Shown here: piece by piece, positions 1,316 to 47,188 of the stretch | Numbering within the stretch: position 1 is the stretch's first letter | Layout: each line of letters starts with the position of its first letter | Notes under the pieces: model-generated | Seen by the model: only the letters and a program-made list of their open reading frames with translations | What the model was told of the DNA's origin: nothing | Databases searched by the model: none | Position numbers and translations under genes: made by a program | Assembly: GCA_002269645.1 (NCBI GenBank) | Contig: NIVC01000814.1 | Span: 62,001-126,000, forward strand | Length of the DNA: 64,000 bases | Origin: Macrostomum lignano | Lineage: Eukaryota | Direction of reading: 5' to 3'

Positions 1316-2949
1316 TTGTGATTAGCTAATCTATAAGATATTGTTTGTCGAGCTTACGAATTTTCGAACTATTTCGCCGGGGAAGTTTGTGTCGGCCCAT
1401 CTTGCACTAAAGTCAGCGACTCTTATAGTTGCTAGGCTCTGTATAGAATAATTAAATTGTTTTTTCTTTCAAACAGCGCTTTGCACTCGGATTGACCTTC
1501 CCTTTCAGGCACACACAACACCATGCAGTCCTAGTATATCCATGGTGCTGTCCGCAGTATGCACTATATAGTCCTACTAACTTTGTTGGCTTTCCTATGC
1601 AGTATAGCTTGGGTGTATCACTGATCTGTATTGCAGCTTTCGCATGTTCTCTATACATTAAAGTCCTTCCTTGCTTGTATATTGCTCTCTTATAGCCGGA
1701 TATGTGTAGCTAAACCGCCAGGGTACACACAGGAAAAGAGGCCATGCAGTTTGGGGCCTGCAAAATTGATGAGATACTCCTTGTAGAGAGCAAGAAAAAT
1801 CGAGGAGACAGTGGAGAAAAGGGATCGGAGAAAAACTGAATCGGCGTGTCCTTGCGTACTTCAGTTCTCCAACAGATCAGGTCGTACTTTTTGTTGCTTA
1901 TCTCGCTATAAGGATTCTGATCTGCTAGCTGTGAAGCAACTTTCTTTAATGCCTTTCGTCTGGCTTATCCCCGTTTGATGTTTCTCTGATGAAATCTGTT
2001 ATTGTCTATGGCCCAAAGGCTTGCACAAATCTCAAATTGGTTGCTCCGATCCGCAAACACACTGACATCGGATCGATAAATCTGATATCTAGGCGCCAAA
2101 ACTGAAATTGGATCGATAAATTGGACAGCCAGGCGCCAAAACTGACATCGCGGATTGATTAATTCAACCGAGTGGTCAGTCAGAATTAAGAAATCCAGCA
2201 ATCGTGATCAGGCATTTCAAATGCAACTAAAAATATTTAACTTTCGGCAAAGCAAAAACTCAGCCATAGCAACTATATTGCTGCATGAACAGTGAGGGTT
2301 CTGCAGCGCATCGGGATCACCGGCTCCCGTCGGCTTCACGTTTTTATTGATGGCTTCCCAGCCACTAAGCATTGTGCGAATTCTCCTATTTCTACACTGT
2401 CTCTCCTCCGCGCCTCCTATATATATAACACGAATACTGTGTGCAGAAAGAAATGGAAAACTTATAAAGACCCGCATAGCGACTCCATCTCCCCACATAC
2501 CTAAACTTGCTAATTAATATTTGCACTGCCTGGAACTGCAGCCTCCTCTTTGGCCAAAAAACCCCTCAGAATTGTATCTTTGCCCCAGTTATACGAGCCC
2601 TGCGCTGCCGTTCTCAAACTAATTGCATTTTCCTACTTCGATCCCGTTCGGGTAGCTAAATTATCCCTCACCATCAATCCCGTTATTTTTGAAGCCGCAC
2701 ATTTGAGTTCGTTTTGCGTTCTCATCGCAAGCACAGGCTCAATAGGACTGGCTATTAATACTGTATCTATATACGATAGATATACATCTAAACTGCATAT
2801 CTGCATCTTCATTTGGGGCCTGAGCAGTTTCAGCCACCACTTTATTTCTGAATCTACAGCGGAAACAAAGGTAATTTCTTAGCATTAGGGTTTTGTTCAT
2901 TGACGTAATTACACAATCTCAGCTGTTGCGACTTCGTAGCCCTCCCAAA

Positions 2950-3845
2950 TCCTCAGTTGCTGGGCCAGCCTCCCAGAGTGTCAGTTGCTGGGCCAGCCTC
3001 CCAGATCCTCAGCTGCTGGGCCAGCCTCCCAGAGTGTCAGTTGCTGGGCCAGCCTCCCAGAGTGTCAGTTGCTGGGCCAGCCTCCCAGATCCCCAGCTGC
3101 TGGGACAGCCTCCCAGAGTGTCAGTCGCTTGGCCAGCCTCCCTGATCCTCAGCTGCTGGGCCAGCCTCCCAGATCCTCAGTTGCTGGGCCAGCCTCCCAG
3201 ATCCTCAATTGCTGGTCCAGCCTCCCTGATTCTCAGTTGCTGGGTCAGCCTCCCAGATCCTCAGCTGCTGGGCCAGCCTCCCAGATCCTCAGTTGCTGGG
3301 CCAGCCTCCCAGATCCTCAATTGCTGGTCCAGCCTCCCTGATTCTCAGTTGCTGGGTCAGCCTCCCAGATCCTCAGCTGCTGGGCCAGCCTCCCAGATCC
3401 TCAGTTGCTGGGCCAGCCTCCCAGATCCTCAGTTGCTGGGCCAGCCTCCCTGATCCTCAGCTGCTGGGCCAGCCTCCCAGATCCTCAGTTGCTGGGCCAG
3501 CCTCCCAGATCCTCAGTTGCTGGGCCAGCCTCCCAGATCCTCAATTGCTGGTCCAGCCTCTCTGATTCTCAGTTGCTGGGTCAGCCTCCCAGATCCTCAG
3601 CTGCTGGGCCAGCCTCCCAGATCCTCAGTTGCTGGGCCAGCCTCCCAGATCCTCAGTTGCTGGGCCAGCCTCCCAGATCCTCAATTGCTGGTCCAGCCTC
3701 TCTGATTCTCAGTTGCTGGGCCAGCCTCCCAGATCCTCAATTGCTGGGCCAGCCTCTCAGATCCTCAGTTGCTGGGCCAGCCTCCCTGATCCTCAGTTAC
3801 TGGGCCAGCCTCCCAGATCCTCAGTGGCTGGGCTAGCCTCCCAGA
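2950..3845. repeat. 28-bp GC-rich minisatellite (GCTGGGCCAGCCTCCCAGATCCTCAGTT)
   Basis: About 30 copies, starting shortly after the donor-like site AAAG|GTAATT at 2870/2871. Confidence 0.95.
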
Positions 3846-4143
3846 TCCTTATCGTTGTTCACTTTCTCAACATTGCTTTTACTGAAAAATATTTCATAAA
3901 TAAAAAAATGGTTAGCTTGTAAAAGTGTTACGAAAGTACAGAGTGTACTTTATTATCCCGCGGATTTTACCGGCAACTTCGTGTAGCTGTCTTTAAAAAT
4001 AAGCATTATTGAGGAGTCTAAACTCTTAAAATACGAATTTTTGTTTTCTATGTGCACTTTGCTGAGCGGGTTGCGCCATAGACAAGTTCAGACACTACAG
4101 AAACAGTAACAGCAGAAATTTGACCCGAAACTTTCCATTTTAG

Positions 4144-4167
4144 GAAATGAACAGCTTTGATCAACTT
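4144..4167 (+). other. Putative 24-nt micro-exon, likely a 5' exon of the RING gene
   Basis: CTTTCCATTTTAG|GAAATGAACAGCTTTGATCAACTT|GTGAGT has a canonical acceptor and donor and lies in unique sequence between two arrays of the same repeat. Confidence 0.45.
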
Positions 4168-4479
4168 GTGAGTGCACCAAATTCCTGCCCTTCATCAACC
4201 GTTTCTTGTCTAGACTGGACCTTTCACTGCCCTTTAATAATTTACTAATTTCTTTTAGAAGGGGACAGGGGGTACCTAATAGCCATATTGCAATGGGACT
4301 GCAGCTCCCTAGGGAACCTATACAGTCTGCTTACTAAATGGACATAAATCTGAATTAGGCTGGCTTGGGCTCGCTTCAAATTTTGTCTCCGTTTTATTGC
4401 TGCTGGCTGCAAGCCGCTCACGTGAAATGCAATATGGCTGTAATATTCTGCATGCTTTCACATATCATTCTGGGATTCC

Positions 4480-4822
4480 AGACCCTCAGTTGCTGGGCCA
4501 GCCTCCCAGATTCTCAGTTGCTGAGCCAGCCTCCCAGATCCCCAATTGCTGGGCCAGCCTCCCAGATCCTCAGTTGCTGGGTAACCAGCCTCCCAGATCC
4601 CCAGCTGCTGGGACAGCCTCCCAGAGTGTCAGTCGCTTGGCCAGCCTCCCTGATCCTCAGTTGCTGGGCCAGCCTCCCAGATCCTCAGTTGCTGGGTAAC
4701 CAGCCTCCCAGATCCTCAGTTGCTGGGTAACCACCCTCCCAGATCCTCAGTTGCTGGGCCAGCCTCCCAGATCCTCAGTTTCTGGGCCAGCCTCCCAGAT
4801 CCTCAGTTGCTGGGCCAGCCTC
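4480..4822. repeat. Second array of the same 28-bp minisatellite
   Basis: Same unit as 2950-3845, including the variant block GGGACAGCCTCCCAGAGTGTCAGTCGCTTGG. Confidence 0.95.
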
Positions 4823-4889
4823 CATAAGATCCCGATTCTGCACAGAGCACACATCGGTCAGTTTGAGGCCAAGAAACTCCAACCGACCC

Positions 4890-5567
4890 ATGCCGCAGGC
4901 GCGGGCCATGCAGGAGCAGATGAAGATCGGCAGCAACGGAGACTACTTCATCTGCAACGCCAGCATTGTCGGCAACAATAATCGAATCTGGGGCCACAGA
5001 AACTCGGTCACAGGCAATGGCAACGAAGTGTGCGGCAACTGCAACACGGTGGTTGGCAATGACAACATTGTTAAAGGGCTGAACAACAATGTAGTTGGAA
5101 CAAACAATAGCATTGTGGATCAGCAGCAGCCGCAGCCGCCGAGGTCGCCAAACGTATCGGTTAACATCTGCAACAGGACCCGGGTTCGAATCGACAGTCA
5201 GGGGCGTCGATCGTGCGAGAATTTCCACGTCGAGTTGATCGAACACGGGCCAGGCGACAGCGGCAACAGGCAGAACAGCTCCTGTCCCAGCACGCCGAAG
5301 CACTACGACCTGTCCACTCTCGACGGTGTCGACTCCGCCGTGACCGCCGACAATTCTTCGACAACAACTGCAGCTGGCCAAACGGCGGCGAACAGCTGCT
5401 CGGTCTGTCTGTGCAGGGAGCGCTGCGTGAAACTGTCGCCCTGCCGGCACGTGCCGATCTGCGTGACCTGCGCGCATCGCCTGTTCTCTGGGGCTCGAAC
5501 CCGGACCGTACTGTGCCCCCTGTGCCGGTCGCCTGTTGAAGAGATTGAACGGCTGTTTCTGGGATGA
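4890..5567 (+). CDS. RING-HC E3 ubiquitin ligase with N-terminal GxxNxVx heptad (beta-roll) repeats
   Basis: First ATG at 4890, in frame with ORF 4863-5567. The C-terminal CSVC-x11-CRH-x3-CVTC...CPLC ending in IERLFLG is an IAP/Neuralized-type C3HC4 RING. Seven GxxNx(V/I)x repeats lie at 4971-5117. Confidence 0.85.
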   Translation: MPQARAMQEQMKIGSNGDYFICNASIVGNNNRIWGHRNSVTGNGNEVCGNCNTVVGNDNIVKGLNNNVVGTNNSIVDQQQPQPPRSPNVSVNICNRTRVRIDSQGRRSCENFHVELIEHGPGDSGNRQNSSCPSTPKHYDLSTLDGVDSAVTADNSSTTTAAGQTAANSCSVCLCRERCVKLSPCRHVPICVTCAHRLFSGARTRTVLCPLCRSPVEEIERLFLG

Positions 5568-5634
5568 ATTTAATTATTATAGTGATACTGGGGATAACAC
5601 TCTTTGCTAATGTATCGGTTGCAATGGAAGCTAT

Positions 5635-5930
5635 AATCTGGTTGCTATGGGCGCTATAATTTGGTTGCTATGGGTGCTATAATTTTGTGGCTATGGGCGC
5701 TATAATTTGGTTGCTATGGCCGCTATAATTTTGTGGCTATGGGCGCTATAATTTGGTTGCTATGGGCGCTATAATTTGGTTGCTATGGGTGCTATAATTT
5801 TGTGGCTATGGGCGCTATAATTTGGTTGCTATGGACGCTATAATTTGGTTGCTATAATTTTGTGGCTATGGGCGCTATAATTTGGTTGCTATGGGCGCTA
5901 TAATTTGGTTGCTATGGGCGCTAATGTGAT
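5635..5930. repeat. 23-bp minisatellite (GCTATGGGCGCTATAATTTGGTT)
   Basis: About 12 copies directly downstream of the RING stop codon. Confidence 0.9.
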
Positions 5931-8309
5931 TGCTATTGCTGCTATTTAAGTTGCTGGGAACGCAAATTGCATGGTTGCTATGGGTGCAGTTTTTAATATG
6001 GGCGTCACTGTGTTTGCTAATGGACTGAAAATTTGGTTGCTGTGGACGCTATAGATTGCTAAATGTACATGTACATCTATGCATTTCATACTTGTACATG
6101 TACTTGGCTTGGTTGCTAAAACTTTGGTTGTTTGCTTTGCTGCTCAATGTTTGAAATTATTGCCTGGTTGCCTGGTTTCTAAGGGCGCGCTAATTTGGTT
6201 GCTACGGCTATCATCGAGTCATGATCGGTGTGTATCACAAGGGTCACGGAAGCGAGTGACCGGGTTCACGTAAAATTAAAAGGCGTGTACATGATAAACA
6301 AAAACCCGCGACGCCCAACCTCTGAATTTTCAAATCGCTCTTCTTCATTCCATAAATGATAAATTTATGGTTATAAAAATCGAATTATTAACACATGGCT
6401 AACCTAAATTTATCCTACGGGTCTCAGCCAGTTGTATCGCGTTAAAAATTTTCATCGCTGTGTTTTTGCGTTATATTTTCCTCAGGTCATTTATCTTAAT
6501 TATCACTGGTTATTAGCCCTGATCTACACAGGCTACACTGCACTCACACGTACTCAGCTGTGCCGAGGCGTACATGCAGCAGTTGCACTTTTAATTAACC
6601 TATTTAATACTGCTCTCACCACTTTTCTCTTGCGTTTGATAAAAAATCAATTATTTCTAACTGACTAAACGTACTACACTACTTAACTAGCATGCATTAA
6701 GCATTATCAGGAGTATAATACGCGATGTGTTTACTTCTACGAACGAACACGCTTATTTGAAGTAAAATTTTTAAATGCAAAGATTTTCTGATTTAAATAC
6801 ACGTAAATACATTGTTAAATTACGATAACTATTTATCTATTTAAGATTATCAGACTTATTGACTTACATGTATTGATTGAATTGTTTCAACTTCGTACGT
6901 AAAATACAATTATCTCTTTGATCGAATTCTCTTTATATAAAAATTACTATTTTTAAGTAACTTATGCATATCGAGCTTATTTATTTAACTCATTATTATT
7001 GAGCTTTGCCTTTTTAAAAACTTATTTCTTGTCATTTGAATAAACGCAGGTAAAAATAAATAAATACATCGAGTCAAAATGTTCTCAATGAAAAATTAAT
7101 TTTTTAAAGTTTTTTGCACGGATGTTTGCTGTCAGATCTGTTTTCATGTTTTGTATAATAATATGCATAAGTAGCAGCTTGAGACACAATTAATATATTT
7201 ATGCATATTCACTAATCAATCAGACAGAGGGGACAGGAAAATGAAAAAGCAGAAATGACCCAAAAAAACAAGAGGGGCATTTTTTCGCATTGGTGCGTGT
7301 GAATTATTTATTTTACAGCCACTATAATTAATGCTGAAACTAATTAATCAATTAAGCAGATTGTTCACTAACCAGCTGTCAGCGTCTGTTCGATAAGTTT
7401 GAAATACTTTTCGTGCAGCATTTTATAATAGCATCATATTACACTACTAATAGTAGAAACAAAATTATAGGAAATCAACTTCTGCGGAGGCGGCGGACTT
7501 GAAAAAGCGGATTACACAATAAATTGAACTTCGAAAAGAAAGAAAAAAAGCAAACATTAAATAAACACAAAATAGCAGAAGACAACTTTTAGGGAGGCAT
7601 CGATTGGCTCTGTCTAGCAGCTAAACAAATAATTAAATGGACAAAATAAGTTCTTGCAAAATCAAAAAACTCATTTTTCAAAAAACGCACAGAGGGCAGA
7701 CAGACGAACTGTTTGTTTGTTAAAATAAGCAAAGGCTTTGTAAGTAGAAACTGGCGGCAGATGATTGCGGAACACACTACTGCTAGTACTAAGATATGAG
7801 TCTACTTGCGCAACCAATTTGTAATCATAGCAATACCGGTACGTATATACGTATTGATAAATACGGTCAGTAGGATTCGTTTTCATCATTTACACTACAT
7901 AAACACTACATAAATTGCAATTCAATGGATTTAAACAAAACAAACAAATTAAGCCAATCTTAAATTGCCTTGGAAACCATGCGATACTACTAAATAGTAG
8001 AAAACTCAGTACATGTAAGCTTATTAAAATAAGTAGCGATGTTTTTTCTCTGACAAGAAACAATTGACAGCCATCAGATCGAGCATACTAATTACAGTAG
8101 CACACTGTGCCTGGTGTCGGTTATTACATAATAATTACATAAGAAAAATGTGAAATTATTAGGATAATCGGTTTATCACAGATCGTAGTGCTGAAGAGTA
8201 CAAATTCAAAATACAAAAAAGTGATGAAGCACTGTCAGAACTGGATATTTAAGCTGGATTCTGGAGATGAGGGATGCTTTTACCTTTTATGCAAGAGCAA
8301 ATTCTCAGC

Positions 8310-8860
8310 CTGCCAGGTGGACAGTCGCTAATCCCCTCAGGTGGACAGTCGCTAATCCCCTCAGGTGGACAGTCGCTAAACCCCCTCAGGTGGACAGTCG
8401 CTAATCCCCTCAGGTGGACAGTCGCTAACCCCCTCAGGTGGACAGTCGCTAATCCCCTCAGGTGGACAATCGCTAACCCCCTCAGGTGGACAGTCGCTAA
8501 CCCCCTCAGATGGACAGTCGCTAACCCCCTCAGGTGGACAGTCGCTAACCCCCTCAGGTGGACAGTCGCTAATCCCTTCAGGTGAAAATTCACTAATCCC
8601 CTCAGGTGAAGTCACTAATCCCTTCAGGTGAACAGTCGCTAATCCACTCAGGTGGGCAGTCACTAATCCTCTCAGGTGGACAATCGCTAATCCCTCAGGT
8701 GAACAGCCGCTAATCCTCTCAGGTGGACAATAGCTAATCCCTTCAGTTGAAAATTCACTAATCCCCTCAGGTGAAGTCACTAATCCCTTCAGGTGAACAG
8801 TCGCTAATCCACTCAGGTGGGCAGTCACTAATCCTCTCAGGTGGACAATCGCTAATCCCC
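8310..8860. repeat. 24-bp minisatellite (TCAGGTGGACAGTCGCTAATCCCC) degenerating rightwards
   Basis: Direct inspection; the ORFs show an 8-aa period (LRGLATVH). Confidence 0.93.
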
Positions 8861-9984
8861 TGAGGTTAACAGACACAAATCTCTCAGATAAACGTACGCT
8901 AACCACCCCTCACTCCAGAAATCGCCAATGCGCTTTACAAAGAATTTTATATATTTTTCTAATTAGTTTGTTGGAAATAGTACAAAAAAGCAGAAAAATG
9001 TAATATTCAGCGCACAATTTCTAATGCATATAAAAGCAAGCAAACAATATGCAGCGCAAACCGGGACAACAGTTTTACATTGTTGGCTAGATATCACAAT
9101 TATTTATAGAAATTGATAGCAGCTCTTGTTATTGTGCATTTTAAATGGCTTGTTTTCAACTTTCTATACAAATACTACTACTAATAATAGTAAATAATAA
9201 ACTGACTGATATATTACGGAAATATATATGCAAAAAGGAGAGCGCGATTGTGAACAATATAAAATTGTTTTTAAACAACAACAAGGAAAACTGCGGCAAA
9301 TATGATTTCAGCTACTAATTACTACTACAAGTAGCCGTATATCATTATTATTAACAAAAACATCTGGAGCAACACAGTGGTTATCAGTGAAAAAGGAATT
9401 ATAAGCTAATTAAGAGAGACATATTTCTGGTGGCTTGTTGGTGCATAATGCTGGTAAACAAACAAATTGCAGAAATTTAAAATTAACCAAAATAAATACC
9501 TTATATAGCAACAAATTTAATAAAAACAAAAAAATTAAAATAAAGCAGATCAAAGGACAGGTTCAAAGAGAATAAATAAAACCTCAGAGCAAAGCATTTG
9601 AGTAAAAGACAACTAAAAAAGATGTGAAAAGCACATTATTACATAATTATTAATGCATGCAGACACTCCAGAGGCGATGGTACTACAAGAGTATCTCATA
9701 ATTATTGAAAGCAAATCGCACTTTATAAGCAGCTGCTAACAACTAATCAAGATCAATTAAAATTGTCAGTAATTATTAAATAATTCTAGACTCCAAAATA
9801 ACAAAAATTCAAACAAAGTTTTGATAAAATATTAAATAGCAAGGCAGAGACTTTGACTATGACTAAAACTGGTTCGCTTTCTAACAAATTATTTTGTGTA
9901 AACTGATATACACTGCACTTTCACTTTAAATTTGTTCTATAGTGTCCAGACACTTTGCTTTAGCATTGACACAGTTGGGTTATA

Positions 9985-10560
9985 GCTGGGTATCTAGGCA
10001 GATTGGTATCTAGATTACTGGGTATCTAGGCAGATAGGTATCTAGATTACTGGGTATCTAGGCAGATAGGTATCTAGATTACTGGGTATCTAGGCAGATA
10101 GGTATCTAGATAGCTAGGTATCTAGGCAGATGAGTATTTAGATAGCTGGGTATCTAGGCAGATGGGTATCTAGACCACAGGGTATCTAGGCAGATGGGTA
10201 TCTAGGCAATTAGGTATCCAAGCAACTGGGTATCTAGTCAACTGGGTATCTAGTCAACTGGGTATCTAGTCAATTGGGTATCTAGTCAACTGGGTATCTA
10301 GTCAAATGGGTATCTAGTCAATTGGGTATCTAGTCAATTGGGTAGCCAGTCAACTGGGTATCTAGTCAATTGGGTATCTAGTCAATTGGGTATCTAGTCA
10401 ATTGGGCATCTAGTCAATTGGGTATCTAGTCAATTGGGTATCTAGTCAATTAGGTATCTAGTCAATTGGGTATCTAGTCAATTGGGTATCTAGTCAACTG
10501 GGTATCTAGACAACGGGGTATCTAGACAACGGGGTATCTAGACAACTGGGTAGATATTTA
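9985..10560. repeat. Compound GGGTATCTAG-core minisatellite (about 26-bp units, then 17-bp units)
   Basis: GGGTATCTAGGCAGATAGGTATCTAGATTACT units are followed by GGGTATCTAGTCAATT units. Confidence 0.9.
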
Positions 10561-11929
10561 GACATCTGAGAATGTAGACAACTTATTGGATATCAAAGCA
10601 CACCAAATGAGTACTATATAAAGACGCCTAGGTATCTTTATACTACCATATATAGTATACTACTAGTCAACCCACGCAGCTAAACTCTCTGATAATAGAA
10701 CTGAAATTTGAAAAGCAAATTAAAACAGATTAAATTAATTCCGTAATTAATGCACAGACAGGCAGCACACTGGAATTTGATTGATAATAATAACAAATAT
10801 TAATAGTATAACACCATAGAGAAGGCAGATAAACAACGCGCACACATATCTTATAATACTACTACTAATAGTAGCAGATAAGCAAACAGTTTCATGAGGA
10901 ATTTATATATGAATAAGTACAGCATTAAATTATAAGGTTGAGGACATGCTCATCTGTTCAAATTCTCAGCAAACCAAAACACACAGGACCTGTTGAGCAC
11001 ATTTTAAAGTGTGTTAGAGAAACAAAAAGCACACAACAAATCAATGGAAATATCAAATAATTAATAAGACTGGAGATACGCAGTTACTAAGCTGAAATGT
11101 TCAAATGAAAGAATTTAGACTGCAAAACTAGAGCCAGAGAGAACGCCAAAGAGATTAATTAATTAATTCATTCATTCATATACAAAAAGTATAATCATAT
11201 TAGCACGGATTAACCACAACAGATTTCATCCCAAATCTTTAATACATATTAAGATAACAGATATTGCAGTTACTGCATAAACTGACAGCATTGGCTTAGC
11301 CAGAGAGGAGCGGGGAAAAAACTTTATAAAGAATCTTCACTACACTACTTAGCCGAGTAGAAAAGTAAGAGAGTTTTAATCTCTTTTTTTCATTAAAAAA
11401 CGAATGCAACAAACGGATAGAGAAAGGAGCACTGCAAATTTTGAGAGACCTGAGCAGCGCTTGACTGTGTGGCAATTTCGATGGCTGAAACTTTACAGAG
11501 CTATTAAATTATAGAGCCAAAATCCTGCAAGTAATTAGTAGATTAATAATAATAATTAAATTTCGAGAGCAGCTTGGTGAAAGACAACACGTGTTGTGCG
11601 ATTTGAAAGGAGAAAAGAAATTAAATTATAATTTAAAAAAAGCACATTAATACAAGGATAGGACAGTATGAGAATTGAAGCTTTGGAAGTTGGCAAACGA
11701 GTTTTGCTGTATGAAATACTAATTCTCTTATCATTTATGAGCAGCATGAGAAAGCCGAACAAGCTTTAAAAAAACCCTAAATATGAAAGTTGAAAGTAGA
11801 TTTTCTAGACAGGCTTACGCATCGATTGAGTGGCTTATCAGCTAGCTAGAGAAATTAACTTGTCTACAATTCAGATCGATAGCCTTTCGATTAGCTAGTT
11901 TTAATTATTAGATAATAATTTCCAACTTT

Positions 11930-12536: not shown

Positions 12537-12913
12537 TCACATCGGCTCAATGCCACCCTGGTCACCCCAGCCGCCTGTTGGCCAACCGGCTGTCAAAGCC
12601 GAAGCTGACGGCGGCACAGTCGGTGGAAGAGACGGCGGCGGCGGCATCGGCGGCGGAGCGGCGCCGGAGCCGGCTAGCAGAGCGGCAACGCTGGCCTCGG
12701 CCTCAGCATCGCCAATCAGCACAATATGCTGAGCCAGGCTGCTAATATTCTTATGCGCTTTGTCGGCCTCTTCTTTAGTGGCGAATTTCACCATGGCCCA
12801 CTGGTTAACTGGGCCAACTTGTAGGGCCAGCACCCGGCCCTGCTGATTGCAAATCATGCTTAATACGTCACGGTTAATCTGCGGATTCAACTGACGAATT
12901 AGTAGGCAACGTA

Positions 12914-12957
<44 letters not shown>

Positions 12958-15900
12958 TGCTGCTGTTGCTGCCAGCGAGTCCCGGCACCGACTGGCTGCT
13001 GCTGCGGCGGCGGCCGGTTCACAGCCCTGTTGCTGCTGCCGCTACTAGAAGAAACAGCTTCGCCAGCTGTTGACAAGCCAGAATTCAAATGCTGTTCGAG
13101 AGTCTCGTGGGTGACAGAGAATAGACCGTCTTTGTAGCCGCCAGCCCAGGGTTGGCCAGGCACAAATTCTGGGATTTTATCCATCACTTCGCCAGAGATT
13201 AGGCCGCCGCCTCCGCCGCCGCTTCCTGGAGGCATTTCCGAAAAGGAACGTTGGAACGACTGGAGCTGCTGCTGCTGCTGAAGGCTAGGATTGGACACGC
13301 TGGAATGCAGAGGCGGCTTGCCAAACATGGAAGCCGCTTCGGGTACGTCTGGCGACCTGGACGGAATTAATAACAATTCAATATTGTTATTCATAAATTG
13401 ACGGGATCTAGGTCCCAAAGTAAAAGTCCCAATCCAGGTCATAAAGTAAAAGTCCCAATCCAGGTCCCACAGTTAAAGTCCCAATCCAGGTCACAGTAAA
13501 AGTCCCAATCCAGGTCCCAAAGTAAAAGTCCCAATCCAGGTCCCACAGTAAAAGTCCCAATCCAGGTCCCACAGTAAAAGTCCCAATTCAGGTCCCACAG
13601 TAAAAGTCCCAATCCAGGTCCTATTAAAGTCCCAATCCAGGTCATAAAGTAAAAGTCCCAATCCAGGTCCCACAGTTAAAGTCCCAATCCAGGTCACAGT
13701 AAAAGTCCCAATCCAGGTCCCACAGTAAAAGTCCCAATCCAGGTCCCACAGTAAAAGTCCCAATCCAGGTCCCAAAGTAAAAGTCCCAATCCAGGTCCCA
13801 CAGTAAAAGTCCCAATCCAGGTCCCAAAGTAAAAGTCCCAATCCAGGTCCCACAGTAAAAGTCCCAATCCAGGTCCTATTAAAGTCCCAATCCAGGTCAT
13901 AAAGTAAAAGTCCCAATCCAGGTCCCACAGTAAAAGTCCCAATCCAGGTCACAGTAAAAGTCCCAATCCAGGTCCCACAGTAAAAGTCCCAATCCAGGTC
14001 CCACAGTAAAAGTCCCAATCCAGGTCCCAAAGTAAAAGTCCCAATCCAGGTCCCACAGTAAAAGTCCCAATCCAGGTCCCACAGTAAAAGTCCCAATCCA
14101 GGTCCCAAAGTAAAAGTCCCAATCCAGGTCCCAAAGTAAAAGTCCCAATCCAGGTCCCACAGTAAAAGTCCCAATCCAGGTCCCACAGTAAAAGTCCCAA
14201 TCCAGGTCCCAAAGTAAAAGTCCCAATCCAGGTCCCACAGTAAAAGTCCCAATCCAGGTCCCACAGTAAAAGTCCCAATCCAGGTCCCACAGTAAAAGTC
14301 CCAATCCAGGTCCCACAGTAAAAGTCCCAATCCAGGTCCCAGCCCAAGCCTTAATTCCCTATTTAGCGCAACAAGTTAACAAACCTATTCCAAGCATCAT
14401 AGCGGCTTCTAGCTCCAACACTTGCAGACTCGCCAACGTCCAGACTTTTCAATTGATCGACTAGCTGATGCTGCTGCTGCTGCTGCATCGGCGGCGGCTG
14501 ATGCGTAGGCGGCAGACCGGCTGGCTGACTCGGACCAGATCGGGCCTGCAGCTGCTGACTCAACTGTTGAATAGTAGTCTTCAACTGCAGAATCTTTTGA
14601 TTGACTTCCTGCAGTTGTACGCTGGCCTGCTGCTGCTGGCCGCTGCCGCCGCTGAATGGACCAGCTGGCGGCATAGAGCGCATACTATTAGCAATCTTCT
14701 GCTGTTGAGCAGTCAACGCGTGCAATTGATTCTGATGGAAAATCAATTGGTGAACCAATTTCAGATCTGCCTGACTCATGTTTTGGTTTGGCATCAGCGT
14801 GTTAGGCGAGATTATGCGATTCTGTACGGCCAGTCTAAGCTGCTGGATGATCTGATCCCGCATGAGATCCCTAGCGGGATTGGCCTGTCCTGGCTGCTGC
14901 TGCTGCTGCGGCACTCCAGAGCGCACTGCTTGACCGCCGCCTCCAGGAAATATCGGCCTCTGCTGCTGCTGTTGCTGCTGCTGATGCGAAGACATCGACG
15001 GAGGCGGTCCACCAAGCGGTGGCGGGTGCTGCATCGGGTGTCCAAGAGGTGGCGGCTGCAGCTGTGGCGGCGGCTGGCCCATCTGGTGCGCCATATTGGC
15101 GCTGACGCCACCAACTCTGGCTCGCAATTCGTTCAGAGCTAGATCCACATTCATGTTGCAGCTAATCAGGGCCGCTGTGGCGTCCTCTTTGGTGAAGCCC
15201 ATTTCAACCTGGCGGGTTTGTGATAAGGGATAGTCTTTGTATAACTGGTCTTTGTGCCTGTCTCAGCATCTCTCAATGTGTCTTTTAGTACGTATGATTA
15301 ATGTGTCCTTTAGTATGTCTCAATGTGTATTTTAGTGTCTTAATGTATATTTTATAGTATATCTTAATGTGTCCTTTAGTATGTCTCAATGTGTATTTTA
15401 GTGTCTAATTGTATATTTTATAGTATATCTTAATGTGTCCTTTAGTATGTCTCAATGTGTATTTTAGTGTCTAATTGTATATTTTATAGTATATCTTAAT
15501 GTGTCCTTTAGTATGTCCCAATGTGTCTTTCATTACGTCTCAATGTGTCTTTCATTACGTCTCAATGTGTCTTTCATTACGTCTCAATGTGTCTTTCATT
15601 GCGTCTCAAAGTGTCTTTCAGTATGTCTCAATGTGTATTTTAGTGTCTTAATGTATATTTTATAGTATATCTTAATGTGTCTTTCAGTATGTCTCAATGT
15701 GTGTTTTAGCATGTCTTATAATGTGTCTTACGTCTTAATATGTCTATTAGTAAATCATAATGTGTCTTTAGTACGTCTTAAATGTGTTTTAGTGTCTTTT
15801 TTATCTTAGCACCTGCTTAGTATGTCTGAACGCCATTTAACTTCCGAAGTTTCATTTTTTTCTGTAATTCATAGACCATTTGATTGAAGCATTTACAATT

Positions 15901-23988: not shown

Positions 23989-26900
23989 ATGAGCAAAAGC
24001 CCCAGGGGTCAGATTGACTCATCTATTGGCGCCGCAGAGGCTGGCAACGATGCTCAGGCCAGGCCTGGCTTCAGAGTGAAAATCCCCGATCATATCCTGA
24101 CTAATTCGTCTGGTGTTACTAGCGGAACCACCACTGGAATTGCCAGTGCCAGTGCCAGTGCCAGTGCCAGTGCCAGTGCCAGTGATACCGCGACATCAAA
24201 GCCGCCCCCAGCTGCTGCTCCTCAGTCAGCTTTATCAGCAGCAGCAGCGTCAGCAACCTCGACATCGTCGTCGAAACCCCCGCCAACAGCGCCAGCTCGT
24301 CCTCGTCAGTCGCGGGCTGAGCAGCTGCTGCGCGACCTCGATGCCGACATCGAGCGGGACAGGCAGATCCGCGGCCGGCGGTCCTACAGCGCCGATCGAG
24401 CCACGGTCGTTGTCGGAACTGACGATTCAACCACAAAAGAGCACCAGCAGGCTCTGGCAGCCGCTTCGCAGACCGTGGCCCGACATCAGCGGCTTCAAAC
24501 GCCTCCGCCGATGCACTATTACAGCAGTAGCTCCGGCGGGGTGAGTCTGGCCTTCAGTGCTTCAGTCATTTCATTTGCCCCATCTCCAATCCCCTCGGCG
24601 CACAGACTGTACAATGGAAAAGCAGAGCCTGCGGATGCATGACTGTCGCTTTGATTTGTGAGTTGACGCCTCTGACACTTCATGTCTCCTTCATATCTCC
24701 CACGCTTCATATCTCCGACACACACTTCATATCTCCGACACTTCATATCTCCGACACTTCATATCTCCCACGCTTCATATCTCCGACACACACTTCATAT
24801 CTCCGACACACACTTCATATCTCCGACACTTCATATCTCCGACACACACTTCATATCTCCGACACAGACTTCATATCTCCGACACACACTTCATATCTCC
24901 GACACTTCATATCTCCGACACACACTTCATATCTCCGACACACACTTCATATCTCCGACACACACTTCATATCTCCGACACACACTTCATATCTCCGACA
25001 CTTCATATCTCCGACACACACTTCATATCTCCGACACACACTTCATATCTCCGACACACACTTCATATCTCCGACACTTCATATCTCCGACACACACTTC
25101 AAATCTCCGACACACACTTCATATCTTCGACGCCTCATATTTCCGACAATTCATATCTCCGACTCTTCATATCTCCCAACACTTCATATCTCCGTTAGGG
25201 TTAGGGCTGAGGGAGAATTACGAGTATATACTGCGTTAACATTTCTTACACACCATGCCCAGTCGTTAAATTCTGGCTGACAAGAGAGATGACTCATGCA
25301 ATGTCTGTAGGTGTTGCTGTTTGAGGAACGCATTACCAAAAATTGTTCCAATTTGCGTTGCCTACAGCAGCAAGCGAGGTGCATAGTCTAAAAATTCAGT
25401 CTATCCGTCCTCTTTTGTCTCCTCAAACCCTGTTTGTCTGGGCCTGGGCTGCGCGCTGACGACAGTTCTGCCCATACCGCCGACTCTTTCCAATCGTCAG
25501 GCATGTGCAACTCAAGCTCAAAATTAATTGTAGCAAAAGTCCAAATCTGCCGACGAAGCCACCGTAGTGAGCAAATCTGAGGATTATCGAGATGCCAGAG
25601 CTGCACCAGTTCTGAGCAGCACAGAGGATCAGCCTGCTACAGCTTTAACTCCCAGAAGTGAGCAAAAGCGACAGACAGTTGTTAAAATTGTTGAAAGCGA
25701 TCGGCAATTTGCTTCTAGTGGAAGAGATTCTGCCGCGACTGTTGCAACTGCTCAGGTGAGTAGATTTGATTCGGATCTCAGCGACTTACTTTAATCCTTA
25801 TTCATTATACCTAAATATGGGATCAGAGATGCAATTCCCAGTGTCTTAACCCCAATCCCCAAATATGGGATTAGAGATGCAATTCCCGGTGTCTGAATCC
25901 TGATCCCCAAATATGGGATTAGAGATGCAATTCCCAGTGTCTGAATCCTGATCCCCAAATATGGGATTAGAGATGCAATTCCCAGTGTCTGAATCCTGAT
26001 CCCCAAATATGGGATTAGAGATGCAATTCCCAGTGTCTGAATCCTGATCCCCAAATATGGGATTAGAGATGCAATTCCTAGTGTCTAAATCCTGATCCCC
26101 AAATACGGGATTAGAGATGCAATTCCCAGTGTCTAAATCCTGATCCCCAAATATGTGATTAGAGATGCAATTCCCAGTGTCTTAATCCTGATCCCCAAAT
26201 ATAGGATTAGAGATGCAATTCCCAGTGTCTTAATCCTGATCCCCAAATATAGGATTAGAGATGCAATTCCCAGTGTCTTAAACCTGATCCCCAAATATGG
26301 GATTAGAGATGCAATTCCCAGTGTCTTAATCCTGATCCCCAAATATGGGATTAGAGATGCAATTCCCAGTGTCTTAATCCTGATCCCCAAATATAGGATT
26401 AGAGATGCAATTCCCAGTGTCTTAATCCTGATCCCCAAATATGGGATTAGAGATGCAATTCCCTGTGTCTTAATCCTGATCCCCAAATATGGGATTAGAG
26501 ATGCAATTCCCAGTGTCTTAATCCTGATCCCCAAATATGGGATTAGAGATGCAATTCCCAGTGTCTTAATCCTGATCCCCAAATATGGGATTAGAGATGC
26601 AATTCCCAGTGTCTTAATCCTGATCCCCAAATATGGGATTAGAGGTGCAATTTCCAGTGTCTTAATCCTGATCCCCAAATATGGGATTAGAGATGCAATT
26701 CCCAGTGTCTAAATCCTGATCCCCAAATATGGGATCAGAGATGCAATTCCCAGTGTCTTAATCCTGATCCCCAAATATGGGATTAGAGGTGCAATTTCCA
26801 GTGTCTTAATCCTGATCCCCAAATATGGGATTAGAGATGCAATTCCCAGTGTCTTAATCCTGATCCCCAAATATGGGATTAGAGGTGCAATTCCCAGTGT

Positions 26901-29900
26901 CTTAATCCTGATCCCCAAATATGGGATTAGAGATGCAATTCCCAGTGTCTTAATCCTGATCCCCAAATATAGGATTAGAGATGCAATTCCCAGTGTCTTA
27001 ATCCTGATCCCCAAATATGGGATTAGAGATGCAATTCCTAGTGTCTAAATCCTGATCCCCAAATATGGGATTAGAGATGCAATTCCCAGTGTCTTAATCC
27101 TGATCCCCAAATATGGGATTAGAGGTGCAATTTCCAGTGTCTTAATCCTGATCCCCAAATATGGGATTAGAGATGCAATTCCCAGTGTCTTAATCCTGAT
27201 CCCCAAATATGGGATTAGAGATGCAATTCCCTGTGTCTTAATCCTGATCCCCAAATATGGGATTAGAGATGCAATTCCCAGTGTCTTAATCCTGATCCCC
27301 AAATATGGGATTAGAGATGCAATTCCCAGTTTCCTGACCCTCATCCCCAAATATAGGATTAGAGATGCAATTCCCAGTGCAGGCATTTCAAATCCCTACT
27401 CTTATTCTTACAACACAATGTCTCACAGAGCCAGGGTCCGCGCCTCAGCAGTGAAGACTCTCAACGCCTGTTAGACCGACTGCTGCTTGAAAAAGAAACC
27501 ATGGCAACGGAGCTAAACCAGCTTCGTCAGCAGCAGCAGCAACAGAGGCCTGTAGGAGGACAATTTCCCTCTGGAAGAGCCCTGGAGCGGCAGCAGCAGC
27601 AGCAGTACGCTACACTGCCAGAGTATGATCCTGAGAATCCGTCTGCTTTGAAGAGACGTATTGGTAAGTAAAGATGTTGCAGTATTTATTTATTAATTAT
27701 TGTACATGAATTATTAGCTATTATTCGCTTATGAGCAACTTGTGTCACTATGAGTTTTAGTTTCATTGTGTGAACTGTCTAGCATTGGCTGCAATCGATT
27801 CTGGTCATACAGATTAGCCTACAACCGATTCTGGTCATATAGATTATCTCACAGTCGATTCTGGTCATACATATTAGCTTACAATCGATTCTGGTCATAG
27901 AGATTATCTCACAATCGATTCTGGTCATAGAGATTATCTCACAATCGATTCTGGTCATACAGATTAGCTTACAATCGATCCTATGATAAGACTCACTCAC
28001 CTTAATTTTTGTGTCCAGTGGACTTGGAGCAGCAAATCTTGGATCTGCAAGAAGCCAACGAGACTCTCAAGTTGGCCTCCTCTCCAGTTGACAGCGGCGC
28101 CAGTGGCGGCGCCAGAGTGGCGCCAACCGTGGCCGAGAACCGACTGCGCGCCAGACTGGACCAGGTCACGGTTGAAAACGAAGCCTTGAAAAATGAGGTG
28201 CGTTAACAAAGAATCGCCCTTTCAAATGATCTAAAAGTACGAGTATAAGCCCTTTAAATAATCTTTTGAAACTAATTAGATGACGAAGCATTTAACTGTT
28301 TTGCATAAGGTATAGTTACTCTCGCCGTCTACTCAAAAAAGTTTGCTTTAGGATTTACCTAAATGATTTGTTGGTTTCCTATAATTACAGTTATAATTAT
28401 AGCAAATAAATAAACTACTAATTTGAAATCTTCTATTCAAGTTAAACCGACTGCGTCAGCAACGAGAGCAGCCGGACATGGAATTTATCCGAGCCGAACT
28501 TGACAGTCTCCGAGCCGAGTTAGACGTGCTTCGCGACCGGAACTACCAGTTGGAACGAGAGAATCGACGCCTATTGGAGACCGGAAGTCCGTTCTTTGCA
28601 GCAGATCCCTACGGACTTGCCGGTAAATTCTAGTTTTTTGGTTTTATAATATGTATTTTGCTTCAATATTCTTTTCTGTCTACTATAAGTAGGGTTTTGA
28701 GCTAAATTCAAGCTTTTTTTAGTTTTTTTGACATTCATTAAACCTAGCAAGGTATTAGATGGATTTAACACATACTGAGATTGCCTAATTTTTGTACATG
28801 TGCATGAAGCTAACATTGTGGTACACATGACAACAATTGTGACACATGACAACAATTGTGACACATGACAACAATTGTGACACATGACAACAATTGTGAC
28901 ACATGACAACAATTGTGACACATGACAACAATTGTGACACATGACAACAATTGTGACACATGACAACAATTGTGACACATGACAACAATTGTGACACATG
29001 ACAACAATATTGACACATGACAACAACTGTGACACATGATAATTATGACACATGACAACAATATTGACACATGACAACAATTGTGACACACGACAACAAT
29101 ATTGACACATGACAACAATTGTGACACATGACAACAATATTGACACATGACAACAATTGTGACACATGACAACAATTGTGACACATGACAACAATTGTGG
29201 CACACGACAACAATATTGACACATGACAACAATTGTGACACATGATATTTATGACACACGACAACAATATTGACACATGATAACAATTGTGACACATGAT
29301 AATTATGACACACGACAACAATATTGACACATGACAACAATATTGACACATGACAACAACTGTGACACATGATAATTATGACACATGACAACAATATTGA
29401 CACATGACAACAATTGTGACACATGACAACAATATTGACACATGACAACAATTGTGACACATGACAACAATATTGACACATGACAACAATATTGACACAT
29501 GACAACAACTGTGACACATGATAATTATGACACATGACAACAATATTGACACATGACAACAATTGTGACACATGACAACAATATTGACACATGACAACAA
29601 TTGTGACACATGACAACAATATTGACACATGACAACAATATTGACACATGACAACAACTGTGACACATGATAATTATGACACATGACAACAATATTGACA
29701 CATGACAACAATTGTGACACATGACAACAATATTGACACATGACAACAATTGTGACACATGACAACAATTGTGACACATGACAACAATATTGACACATGA
29801 CAACAATATTGACACATGACAACAATTGTGACACATGACAACAATATTGACACATGACAACAATATTGACACATGATAATTATGACACATGACAACAATA

Positions 29901-30139
29901 TTGACACATGACAACAATTGTGACACATGACAACAATATTGACACATGACAACAATTGTGACACATGATAATTATGACACATGACAACAATTGTGACACA
30001 CGAAAACAATCCCTCGCCTGATAAAAATGGCATTTTTGCGGATCCGTGCACCCGCAATCAGGTGGATTTTCGTCAGACAATCCATACAGACTGTTAGTTG
30101 AACGGTCAGGCGCACAGCCAAGAGTCAGAGACATTTTTA

Positions 30140-30170
<31 letters not shown>

Positions 30171-33100
30171 GCAGCAGCAGCAGTCTGTTGAACATCAGCA
30201 ACAGTTCCTTCAGCACAGATCAGACGTTGATCGATACGATCGAATGATTGATCGATTTATGGCCGATACAGCAGTTTGTGAGCTGTTGTTTTTTCATGGC
30301 GCTTTTTTTTCTCAACCTTTAAATATTGGTGTTGTATTTGTGCGCTGCTATGTCACTTTAACTTGGGTCTTTGGCACTTATTATTGAACTCTTGCTGTTG
30401 CTACTTACTGTCCCTGGCGTCCCTGGCATCCCTGGCATCCCTGGCGTCCTTGGTGTCCCTGGCGTCTCTGGTATCCCTGGAGTCCCTGGTGTTTGGCTTC
30501 TCTGGTATCCCTGGAGTCCCTGGTGTCTGGCTTCTCTGGTATCCCTGGAGTCCCTGGTGTCTGGCTTCTCTGGTATCCCTGGAGCCCCTGGCGTCCCTGG
30601 AGTCCCTGGAATCTCTGGCATCCCTGGCGTCCTTGTTGTCTCTGGTATCCCTGGAGTCCCTGGAATCCCTGGCGTCCTTGGTGTTCCTGGCGTCCTTGGC
30701 ATCCCTGGTGTCCTTGACATCCCTGCTGTCCCTGGGATCCCTGGTGCCCCCCTGGTATCCCTGGTATATTACTTGCATCGACATTCTTGTTAAAATATTA
30801 CTAGTATTTTTGTAAATCTTTCTTTGAACTTGATATTTGCACAATTTTACATTTTGTTTAAACGAACCTTCAGCACCTAAATTACGCGCACAACTCTTTC
30901 TTGAAAGTTTATTTCTTTGCATTTATTTGCTTTCATTTTTCAAGCTTGATTAAATGCATTGTGCAGCTTTTCACTTTTTCTCGAGAGAATCACCCCCGAG
31001 AGAATCGCCCCAAGAGAATCACCCCCGAGAGAATCGCCCCCAACGCCCCAAGAGAATCGCCCCCAAGAGAAACGCCCCCAAGAGAATCGCCCCCGAGAGA
31101 ATCGCCCGCAAGAGAATCATCCCCGAGTGAATCGCCCCCAAAAGAATCGCCCCCGAGAGAATCGCCCCCAAGAGAATCGCCCCGAGAAAATCGCCCCCAA
31201 GAGAATCGCCCCCGAGAGAATCGCCCCCGAGAGAATCGCCCCTGAGAGAATCGCCCTCGAGAGAATCACCCCCGAGAGAATCGCCCCAAGAGAATCAACC
31301 CCGAGAGAATCGCCCCCCGAGAGAATCGCCCCCAAGAGAATCGCTCCCAATAGAATCGCCCCCAAGAAAATCGCCCCCAAGAGAATCGCCCCGAGAGAAT
31401 CACCCCCGAGAGAATCGCCCCCAAGAGAATAGCCCCAAGAAAATTGCCCCCGAGAAAATCGCCCCAAGAGAATCGCCTCCCAAGAGAATCGCCCCCGAGA
31501 GAATCGCCCCCAAGAGAATCGCCTCCCAAGAGAATCGCCCCCGAGAGAATCGCCCCAAGAGAATCACCCCCGAGTGAATCGCCTCCCAAAAGAATCGCCC
31601 CCGAGAGAATCGCCTCCCAAGAGAATCGCCCCGAGAGAATCGCCCCCAAGAGAATCGCCTCCCAAGAGAATCGCCTCCCAAGAGAATCGCCCCCAAGAGA
31701 ATCGCCTCCCAAGAGAATCGCCCCCGAGAGAATCGCCCCAAGAGAATCACCCCCGAGTGAATCGCCTCCCAAGAGAATCGCCTCCCAAGAGAATCGCCCC
31801 AAGAGAATCACCCCCGAGTGAATCGCTCCCAAGAGAATCGCCCCAAAGAGAAACGCCCCCAAGAGAATCGCCCCGAGAAAATCGCCCCAAGAGAATCGCC
31901 CCCGAGAGAATCGCCCCCAAGAAAATCGCCCCCAAGAGAATCGCCCCCAAGAGAATCGCCCCCGAGAGAATCGCCCCCAAGAAAATTGCCCCCGAGAAAA
32001 TCGCCCCAAGAGAATCGCCTCCCAAGAGAATCGCCCCCGAGAGAATCGCCCCCGAGAGAATCGCCTCCCAAGAGAATCGCCCCCGAGAGAATCTCAATAA
32101 AAGAAGAAATCACAATTTGCCAAACCACACAGATGCCAATAACCCTGCGCTAGCATCGATACCAACAACAGGCAGCTCAAATCAGTTTTTATACAATGAC
32201 GATCGGCAGCATGAATTCGAACCGGAGACTCGTCCTTACTACGGCTCCCTAGGCCGGTCGCCCCAGCCTCATCAGCCTCATCATCGGCAGCAACGCCAGT
32301 CGAGAATTGGCGATAAGATGCGCCACTCCTTGGACTCAGAGCAGCGGCAGCAGCGGCAGCAGCAGCAGCGGAACAGCAGGAGGCCGGCCAATCACGGACG
32401 CCAAGCAGAACGTTCCATAGTCTATGGCAGCCATCAGCAGCCGCCTGCGGCTTGGCGAAACGGTCGATCAGCTTCTTACACTAGCAACGGCGGGACAAGC
32501 GATTCTGACGAGGACGATCGGACTAACGATCTGCTTCTCTACGGAGCTGATGGGAAGGCGGCGGCCACGGCGGCTCCAGCTAGACGGCCGGGTCAGCATC
32601 AAGATACTGCTGGGGCAGGCTATTTTGTTGATAGAAGCTGTGAGTGAGAAATGCTGATGGCTTTTTCTAAGGTTTCGGAGGATTGATCCTGAGGTTTCGG
32701 AGGATTGATCCTGAGGTTTCGGATGATTGATGATCCTGAGGTTTGGAATGATTGATCCTGAGGTTTGGGATGATTGATGATCCTGAGGTTTGGGATGATT
32801 GATCCTGAGGTTTGGGATGATTGATGATCCTGAGGTTTGGGATGATTGATCCTGAGGTTTGGGATGATTGATGATCCTGAGGTTTGGGATGATTGATCCT
32901 GAGGTTTGGGATGATTGATGATCCTGAGGTTTGGGATGATTGATGATCCTGAGGTTTGGAATGATTGATCCTGAGGTTTGGGATGATTGATGATCCTGAG
33001 GTTTGGGATGATTGATCCTGAGGTTTGGGATGATTGATGATCCTGAGGTTTGGGATGATTGATCCTGAGGTTTGGGATGATTGATGATCCTGAGGTTTGG

Positions 33101-47092: not shown

Positions 47093-47153
<61 letters not shown>

Positions 47154-47156
47154 GCC

Positions 47157-47188
<32 letters not shown>

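Follow-up and report, generated by a model that had tools for sequence, protein, structure and literature searches.

RING E3 ubiquitin ligases are defined by the recognition module that lies outside the RING. Ligases of the IAP class (cIAP1/2, XIAP, and BIRC7), together with IDOL/MYLIP, MDM2, and MEX3C, carry a C-terminal RING with C3HC4 spacing, an arginine after the last CxxC, and a short tail containing phenylalanine. RINGs of the cIAP/IDOL/BIRC7 type are dimeric, and it is established for RNF4, BIRC7, and MDM2 that the donor ubiquitin is held by this linchpin arginine together with an aromatic residue from the C terminus of the partner protomer. The beta-roll of the ryegrass ice-binding protein LpIBP (PDB 3ULT) and of the IRI domain of grass IRIPs is built from a 7-residue xxNxVxG repeat with a glycine at the turn, a ladder of asparagines, and a Val/Ile core. 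Here, we describe a gene that joins domains like these two, at 2775-5567 on the plus strand of a 64,000-nucleotide stretch of DNA (the window) from the flatworm Macrostomum lignano (contig NIVC01000814.1, positions 62,001 to 126,000). The M. lignano gene is intact and under constraint, has a gene model with splicing, and codes for a protein in which an IRI-type beta-roll is joined to a C-terminal RING of the IAP class; it belongs to a large uncharacterised family. We assign a probability of about 0.75 to the reading that it is a functional nuclear gene for a 219-amino-acid (aa) protein of an unnamed family, consisting of a beta-roll, a linker, and a RING of the IAP/MDM2/IDOL class, in which the roll would present surfaces for substrate binding or assembly. 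We came across no account of an IRI-type beta-roll acting as recognition module, and literature on PF21300 (LbR_Ice_bind), on beta-roll and RING combinations, and on the M. lignano genes contained no description of the architecture.

The RING occupies the C-terminal end of the protein (5397..5564, plus strand) and runs from C164 to C206; Arg207 directly follows the last CxxC, and the 13-residue tail ends in LFLG. All eight zinc ligands are present at 5397-5525 in the spacing C-x2-C-x11-C-x-H-x3-C-x2-C-x14-C-x2-C, followed by the tail RSPVEEIERLFLG. The domain matches Pfam zf-C3HC4_3 (PF13920) with 34.2 bits against a cut-off of 27 (E = 2.3e-8), and its closest PDB matches by sequence are the RINGs of MGRN1, cIAP2, MDM2, and TRIM2. 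Its predicted local distance difference test (pLDDT) score is 86-91 in the AlphaFold2 model, and a Foldseek search with it recovers cIAP2 (3EB5), IDOL (2YHO/9SA2), cIAP1 (6HPR), BIRC7 (4AUQ), MEX3C, and XIAP, with a probability of 1.0, a template modelling (TM) score relative to the target of 0.6-0.8, and a root-mean-square deviation (rmsd) of 1.3-2.0 A; for the cIAP2, IDOL, cIAP1, BIRC7, and XIAP RINGs, it is 1.3-1.6 A over about 60 residues. By phmmer, the tail aligns to the ...RTFLS tail of cIAP2, with the phenylalanine three residues from the end, and both the linchpin position (CPLC-R207) and the tail aromatic (LF217LG) are present. An earlier note on this DNA, made from the letters alone, had proposed an IAP-type C-terminal RING and hence a putative E3 ligase, in agreement with the Pfam score above cut-off and with the superposition on the cIAP2, IDOL, cIAP1, BIRC7, and XIAP RINGs.

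Pfam finds no BIR domain in the window protein at E <= 1, and the protein is therefore not an IAP; only its RING is IAP-like. Nor does Pfam find an NHR domain, and the protein is not a Neuralized protein. Unlike the IAP, IDOL, MDM2, and MEX3C ligases, it has no BIR, FERM, p53-binding, or KH domain by Pfam, and the beta-roll stands in place of the substrate-binding module. The window protein most likely works as RING ligases of the IAP/IDOL/MDM2 type do, as a dimeric RING E3 with the roll as its surface for recognition or assembly; it would be active with a UBE2D-type E2. It would dimerise via the RING and the tail and would bind UBE2D-type E2~ubiquitin, with Arg207 and, from the tail of the partner protomer, Phe217 keeping the donor ubiquitin in a closed, reactive conformation. 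The variable surfaces of the rigid, flat beta-roll would capture substrate or drive higher-order assembly, making the roll a candidate module for substrate recognition or self-assembly.

The beta-roll covers residues 4-70 (4917..5117, plus strand) and is supported by AlphaFold2, Pfam, a family profile, and a shuffle test. It opens with the cap motif YFICNASIVG, followed at 4971-5117 by seven perfect G-x-x-N-x-V-x heptads (GNNNRIW/GHRNSVT/GNGNEVC/GNCNTVV/GNDNIVK/GLNNNVV/GTNNSIV), all in one register, with glycine at position 1 and asparagine at position 4 in all seven. When the protein was shuffled 20,000 times, no shuffle gave more than 4 in-register heptads. AlphaFold2 predicts ten short strands with a 7-residue period across residues 4-70, with a pLDDT of 95-98 in the full-length model and, for the isolated domain, a pLDDT of 96 and a predicted TM score of 0.79; as modelled, the roll is clearly a solenoid. 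Glycine would sit at the turn, an internal asparagine ladder and a Val/Ile core would hold the roll together, and the outward positions would be variable.

LbR_Ice_bind is the sole non-RING Pfam match of the window protein, and a profile built from 26 family N termini (A6) matches LpIBP 3ULT at E = 2.9e-17. The same profile matches the adhesin heads of BpaC, CbpF, and UspA1 weakly (2e-6 to 7.5e-3), far behind 3ULT. At the profile level, the N-terminal domain is homologous to the grass IRI domain, with a different biology. The heads of the trimeric autotransporter adhesins (BpaC, UspA1, and Fusobacterium CbpF) resemble it in having short G/N-rich repeats that form parallel beta-rolls, but the adhesins are secreted trimeric proteins of bacteria that have coiled-coil stalks, membrane anchors, another repeat register, and no RING, and we treat the resemblance as one of repeats only. 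The earlier note had reported an open reading frame (ORF) with the seven heptads at exactly these coordinates, a linker of low complexity, and a C3HC4 RING at the end, all of which are confirmed here, and had compared the repeats to a grass-antifreeze-type beta-roll. That comparison is supported by the family profile against 3ULT, by PF21300 matches across most of the family (see below), and by the AlphaFold2 solenoid. Structure prediction of the repeat region, which the note had suggested, gives a high-confidence solenoid with a 7-residue period; the seven heptads are present as part of it, but the roll is longer than they are, with ten strands over residues 4-70 of 219.

The fold raises the alternative of an ice-binding, antifreeze, or other secreted surface-binding protein as in grasses, to which the RING would be incidental. 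The ryegrass ice-binding fold is the best non-RING match, and threonine is the commonest outward residue in the family, accounting for 25% of residues in heptad position 5 and 21% in position 7. In contrast to LpIBP and the IRIPs, however, the window protein is fused to an intracellular-type E3 RING, and direct reading of its N terminus, MQEQMKIGSNGDY, reveals no hydrophobic signal or signal peptide, so that the protein is presumably cytosolic or nuclear. Its outward rows (R/W, S/T, E/C, T/V, I/K, N/V, and S/V) are irregular and are not conserved in the M. lignano paralogue P0002 described below. Because of the missing signal peptide, the irregular and unconserved faces, and the intracellular partner domain, ice binding by the window protein is very unlikely, as had been anticipated from the sequence, and a grass-like secreted role of any kind is hardly credible. 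M. lignano is, moreover, a temperate marine flatworm. A salmonid genome preprint reports an expansion of about 19 LbR_Ice_bind-domain proteins and reads it as cold adaptation (bioRxiv 10.1101/2025.09.09.675276). Since LbR_Ice_bind is also found in intracellular RING ligases, that reading of the salmonid domain counts may need a check of full architectures, and the family described here cautions against equating LbR_Ice_bind domain counts with cold adaptation.

Between the roll and the RING, the plus strand encodes a Q/P-rich low-complexity linker, DQQQPQPPRSPNVS (5118..5159), that is not conserved with P0002; AlphaFold2 gives residues 74-89 a pLDDT below 50. Two conserved elements are shared with P0002: a basic beta-hairpin, VNICNRTRVRIDSQGRRSCENFHVELIE (residues 85-112; 5160..5243), modelled with moderate confidence as strands 90-95 and 101-106, and a short acidic motif, YDLSTLDGVDS, upstream of the RING (5304..5336). 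The middle region outside the hairpin and motif is mostly disordered in the model. Among 150 relatives, P0002 is the sole phmmer match to the middle region, and the hairpin and YDLSTLDGVDS occur in no other relative; the basic hairpin is Macrostomum-specific. Other family members have an acidic P-x-x-[DE]-rich stretch before the RING, and D/E make up 24% on average of the 30 aa upstream of it.

The protein is encoded in ORF 4863..5567 (plus strand), for which the ORF listing gives an ATG at 4890. An M. lignano gene model, P0001 (UniProt A0A1I8H3F5; 159 aa, auto-named 'Pectate lyase'), is 99% identical to the window protein and defines the splicing of the gene. The first 32 residues of P0001 are absent from the stretch just upstream of the ORF and map at 100% identity to window positions 2775-2870, and the model fuses ...AETK (ending at 2870) straight to ARAMQEQ (starting at 4899). 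On this basis, the gene has on the plus strand a noncoding exon 1 in the 5' untranslated region (UTR) without an ATG (2775..2870), with a TATTAATA-like box about 20 nt upstream; a 2028-nt 5'UTR intron (2871..4898); and an exon 2 (4899..5567) that holds the whole coding sequence (CDS) at 4908-5567 (219 aa plus stop codon), in a frame conserved with P0002. The intron is canonical GT-AG, with a GTAAT donor at 2871 (the exon border reads AAG followed by GTAAT) and a CCGCAG acceptor ending at 4898. The earlier note had begun the coding stretch at 4890, but that ATG sits within the final 9 nt of the intron, and the likely start codon is therefore 4908, the first AUG of the spliced mRNA (context GCCATG), giving a protein of 219 aa. 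No stop codon precedes the beginning of P0001 at 2775, so that its 5' end looks as if it came from a transcript. There is no AATAAA within 1.4 kb downstream of the stop codon. Neither an antisense ORF (4803..5477, minus strand) nor a +2-frame ORF (5213..5539) has a family match, and only the 4908-5567 frame is conserved in P0002; we treat the overlapping ORFs as by-products of a CDS rich in GC at third codon positions (GC3).

The paralogue, P0002 (BOX15_Mlig030838g1; 242 aa), lies on another scaffold, is 46% identical over its full length, and also has a single coding exon. Nonsynonymous (dN) and synonymous (dS) divergence between the copies, estimated by the Nei-Gojobori method, are 0.35 and 1.23 for the whole protein (dN/dS of about 0.28), 0.29 and 2.37 for the roll, and 0.18 and 0.61 for the RING. 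By these values, the duplication is old, and purifying selection has acted on both copies. The gene has a GC content of 0.58 and a GC3 of 0.73, within host ranges of 0.52-0.62 and 0.57-0.79 (host ORFs of the window and the RNA_pol_L gene beside the paralogue), and its composition gives no sign of recent import.

The single-exon CDS had been considered compatible with retroposition, and a processed retrocopy or a decaying, functionless pseudogene in satellite-rich DNA would also fit the minisatellite arrays on both sides of the locus and an NCBI annotation without a gene of exactly this product. The CDS does occupy a single exon, but the gene does not, having a noncoding exon and an intron upstream. 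No multi-exon parent is evident because the paralogue, too, has a single coding exon; together with the spliced 5'UTR intron and the absence of a poly(A) tract after the stop codon, this leaves retroposition unsupported. Decay is at odds with an intact frame of 219 codons that keeps all zinc ligands and with the low dN/dS against the paralogue, for which dS is saturated. We consider a retrocopy or pseudogene highly improbable.

Four observations weigh against a functional beta-roll RING ligase. The database gene model that indicates transcription is a single one and is a fragment at both ends. The window protein alone scores 27.2 bits against LbR_Ice_bind (26.8 for the 219-aa form), under the Pfam gathering cut-off of 30. 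A Foldseek search of the PDB with the isolated roll model returns nothing at E <= 1e-3, with 3ULT outside the top 50 and only weak, high-rmsd matches to unrelated beta-solenoids. Finally, the RING has Ser-Val between its first two cysteines where the family has x-Ile, and its E2 affinity could differ as a result.

Beyond M. lignano, the architecture recurs in a large family. A HMMER search over 1.84 billion representatives returned 533 matches at E <= 1e-3, among which only the two M. lignano proteins fall below 1e-30. We defined the family by an N-cap (hydrophobic-x-N-[ANS]-[ST]-hydrophobic-hydrophobic-G), at least four G-x-x-N-x-[VI]-x heptads, a linker that varies, and a RING of the zf-C3HC4_3 type whose end lies 11 to 13 residues before the C terminus. 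The median length of the linker is 103 aa. This architecture is found in 106 of the 150 best matches, the window protein included, most of them 155-340 aa long, and the family comprises at least 100 clusters at 50% identity. Features were counted over 96 members (alignment A5): all match PF13920, 84 match PF21300 at E <= 1e-3 (best, 6.5e-18), 83 have R or K after the last CxxC, and 90 have an aromatic residue within the last 6 residues. Heptad positions 1, 4, and 6 (G, N, and I/V) are fixed and positions 2, 3, 5, and 7 vary, a pattern that suggests a conserved scaffold displaying variable surfaces. The earlier note did not recognise the architecture as an animal family, and no database search returned another named animal protein with it; the two M. 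lignano proteins are the only named members. Word-indexed searches with alignments A2 and A5 gave few extra matches and no informative names, those from Amoebophrya and Aristida matching the RING only.

Repeats this simple could also have arisen more than once. Similar heptads occur in the unrelated adhesin heads of BpaC, CbpF, and UspA1 and in protein P0028, and the middle region is Macrostomum-specific, as would be expected if a beta-roll repeat had fused independently with a local RING in Macrostomum and had come to resemble the environmental family by low-complexity convergence. However, the M. lignano protein and its relatives have more in common than the repeat: the N-cap, the domain order, an acidic stretch before the RING, and a 12- to 13-residue RING tail. 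Single matches also cover both domains, as in P0003, whose residues 3-219 align to query residues 13-224. An independent fusion is therefore improbable. P0020, P0084, and P0109 were rejected as closest RINGs; they are double-RING proteins with summed scores and so are not evidence for independent assembly.

All 30 of the top non-Macrostomum two-domain relatives checked lack a UniRef or nr record; their sources are Logan, ENA, JGI, or NCBI assemblies without annotation. Ten of ten genomic contexts (L003-L006, L009, L094, L197, L265, L266, and the P0004 contig) are dense in genes and rich in ORFans. In the four studied closely (L004, L005, L006, and L009), the spacers between genes measure about 30-50 bp and are rich in AT and in A-tracts. 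Recognisable genes in these contexts are eukaryote-like (SNAP, SET/MYND, LRR, RCC1, ankyrin, protein kinase, GIY-YIG, and HECT-like), and Pfam scans of the relatives' neighbours found almost nothing else, with no giant-virus hallmark gene seen on any context. On one 42.7-kb Logan contig (SRR28493916; L009), four roll and RING paralogues and one roll-only gene stand in tandem at 7659-11488 with A-rich spacers of 20-65 bp between them; nearby are an ankyrin-repeat gene and a partial ORF that exceeds 1700 aa and has no known domain. Two contigs, from NCBI assembly GCA_002059065.1 (L002 162-245) and Logan SRR8820264 (L006 6204-6287), have in common a small ORF of 63-65 aa upstream of the ligase gene, which indicates conserved micro-synteny between related genomes.

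Viral collections contain the family or its parts. A degenerate RING pattern scan of IMG/VR found at least one clear member, a 330-aa protein at 8223-9215 of L094 (IMGVR_UViG_3300028840_002147), a viral contig of 343,745 bp. It adjoins a Ras/Rab GTPase gene and an HSP70 gene split in two ORFs by about 317 nt, a split that may be an intron or a frameshift. This member starts with MGSKHS, an N-myristoylation-like motif. A heptad pattern scan of IMG/VR found roll-only proteins of about 85-250 aa on giant-virus contigs (L016, L018, L020, L021, and L023, including GVMAG-M-3300017989-5), and these GN-x-N-x-V proteins suggest that the roll also circulates as a stand-alone module. No family member came out of IMG/VR peptide scans with P0152, P0025, P0085, P0044, P0045, and the sub-family alignment A3; the latter gave a single match, L007, rejected as a different kind of RING protein. 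A fold search of BFVD gave no two-domain match, and its matches to RING proteins of giant viruses and to baculovirus IAPs were at the RING level only.

Among bacteria and archaea in the genome collection, two-domain matches occur only on L003, which is the same as L165 (JALHNZ010000175.1, labelled 'MAG: Gemmatimonadaceae', for metagenome-assembled genome [MAG]), and on the 153.6-kb L197 (JALHQZ010000008.1, 'MAG: Pirellulales'). Because their neighbours are ORFans, both are probably viral or eukaryotic DNA mis-binned into genomes that serve as species representatives. A RING scan of bacteria also returned proteins of about 1000-1300 aa from Candidatus Endonucleobacter (L175, L179, L231, and others) whose C-terminal end is a RING followed by an IAP-like tail. 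These proteins, from intranuclear/endosymbiotic Gammaproteobacteria, have a BIR-like upstream segment and are unrelated to the roll family. The same scan matched several Endozoicomonas contigs.

The family resembles giant-virus multigene families of the ubiquitin system (RING, ankyrin, and F-box types) in that its members occur as tandem paralogue arrays on gene-dense, ORFan-rich contigs near ankyrin, HECT-like, Rab, and HSP70 genes. For the environmental contigs, 'giant-virus-like' is a well-supported description, not proof. They raise the possibility, less likely than not, that the M. lignano gene has a giant virus as its source or is a viral gene that was endogenised: a viral E3, as opposed to an ancestral animal gene, captured by the Macrostomum lineage and domesticated, with a host promoter and intron acquired later, followed by duplication. 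The confinement of the 30 relatives to metagenome, SRA, or unannotated assemblies, the gene-dense contexts, the tandem paralogues of L009, the L094 member beside Rab-like and HSP70 genes on a viral contig, the roll-only proteins of giant-virus MAG contigs in IMG/VR, and the lack of any other named animal protein all fit this account. However, unlike members of giant-virus multigene families, the window copy is a host gene with a spliceosomal intron; both M. lignano copies are host-like in composition and have no viral ORFs nearby. The contexts lack hallmark genes, and BFVD has no two-domain match. Databases under-sample protists and non-model animals, and metagenome gene callers favour intronless genes, so that the picture of where relatives occur is biased.

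The identity to the best non-Macrostomum match is only about 33-36%; any transfer must therefore be old, and its direction is unreadable. The earlier note had suggested acquisition from a virus or microbe, and the relatives on giant-virus-like contigs lend that suggestion circumstantial support, but low identity, sampling bias, and relatives without taxon labels mean that neither the fact nor the direction of transfer is demonstrated. The distribution of the relatives favours an ancient exchange with giant viruses, which is plausible without being proven. The fuller scenario, in which a giant-virus E3 family expands in tandem arrays and Macrostomum captured one copy long ago that gained a promoter and an intron, duplicated, and came under purifying selection, seems doubtful.

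If viral capture were true, M. lignano would be an animal with a virus-derived ubiquitin ligase whose flat, variable roll recognises a periodic or viral target, such as a capsid or filament, and the protein would be a candidate antiviral or viral-mimicry factor. The family is compact (about 200 aa), large, and predicted with high confidence while being invisible in curated databases. To structural biology it offers a minimal rigid-scaffold E3, and to virology a multigene family, so far uncharacterised, through which ubiquitination in the host is probably manipulated. In flatworm biology, RNA interference and transgenesis in M. lignano make its function directly testable.

The gene lies among ordinary host sequence. 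On the minus strand of the window, ORF fragments with animal-type RRM (12537-13442), UBA (14363-15202), amiloride-sensitive sodium channel (ASC; 46487-47380), and dynamin GTPase effector (GED; 51647-52396) domains are probably exons of ordinary host genes. The 5'UTR intron is filled by a 28-bp minisatellite, CCTCCCAGATCCTCAGTTGCTGGGCCAG, in two arrays (2941-3849 and 4478-4823), and a 23-bp minisatellite (5617..5944) starts 50 nt past the stop codon and probably lies within the 3'UTR or immediately beyond it. A 31-bp unit closely related to the 28-bp one is repeated at 9932-10600 of the other scaffold (L001), 1.2 kb downstream of P0002, and the 28- and 31-bp units are a dispersed minisatellite family near both gene copies. 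The window as a whole (1-64000) is unusually minisatellite-dense, with more than 25 arrays of units of 9-66 bp. Long ORFs at 13491-14330, 32620-36879, and 52947-55589 were rejected as genes, being translated minisatellites. The arrays found by the repeat scan include 181 copies of a 22-bp unit at 32670-36835, 33 of a 48-bp unit at 25813-27379, 64 of a 19-bp unit at 28823-30010, and 254 of GGGAGAGGA at 53023-55348, the last with strong GC and AT skew.

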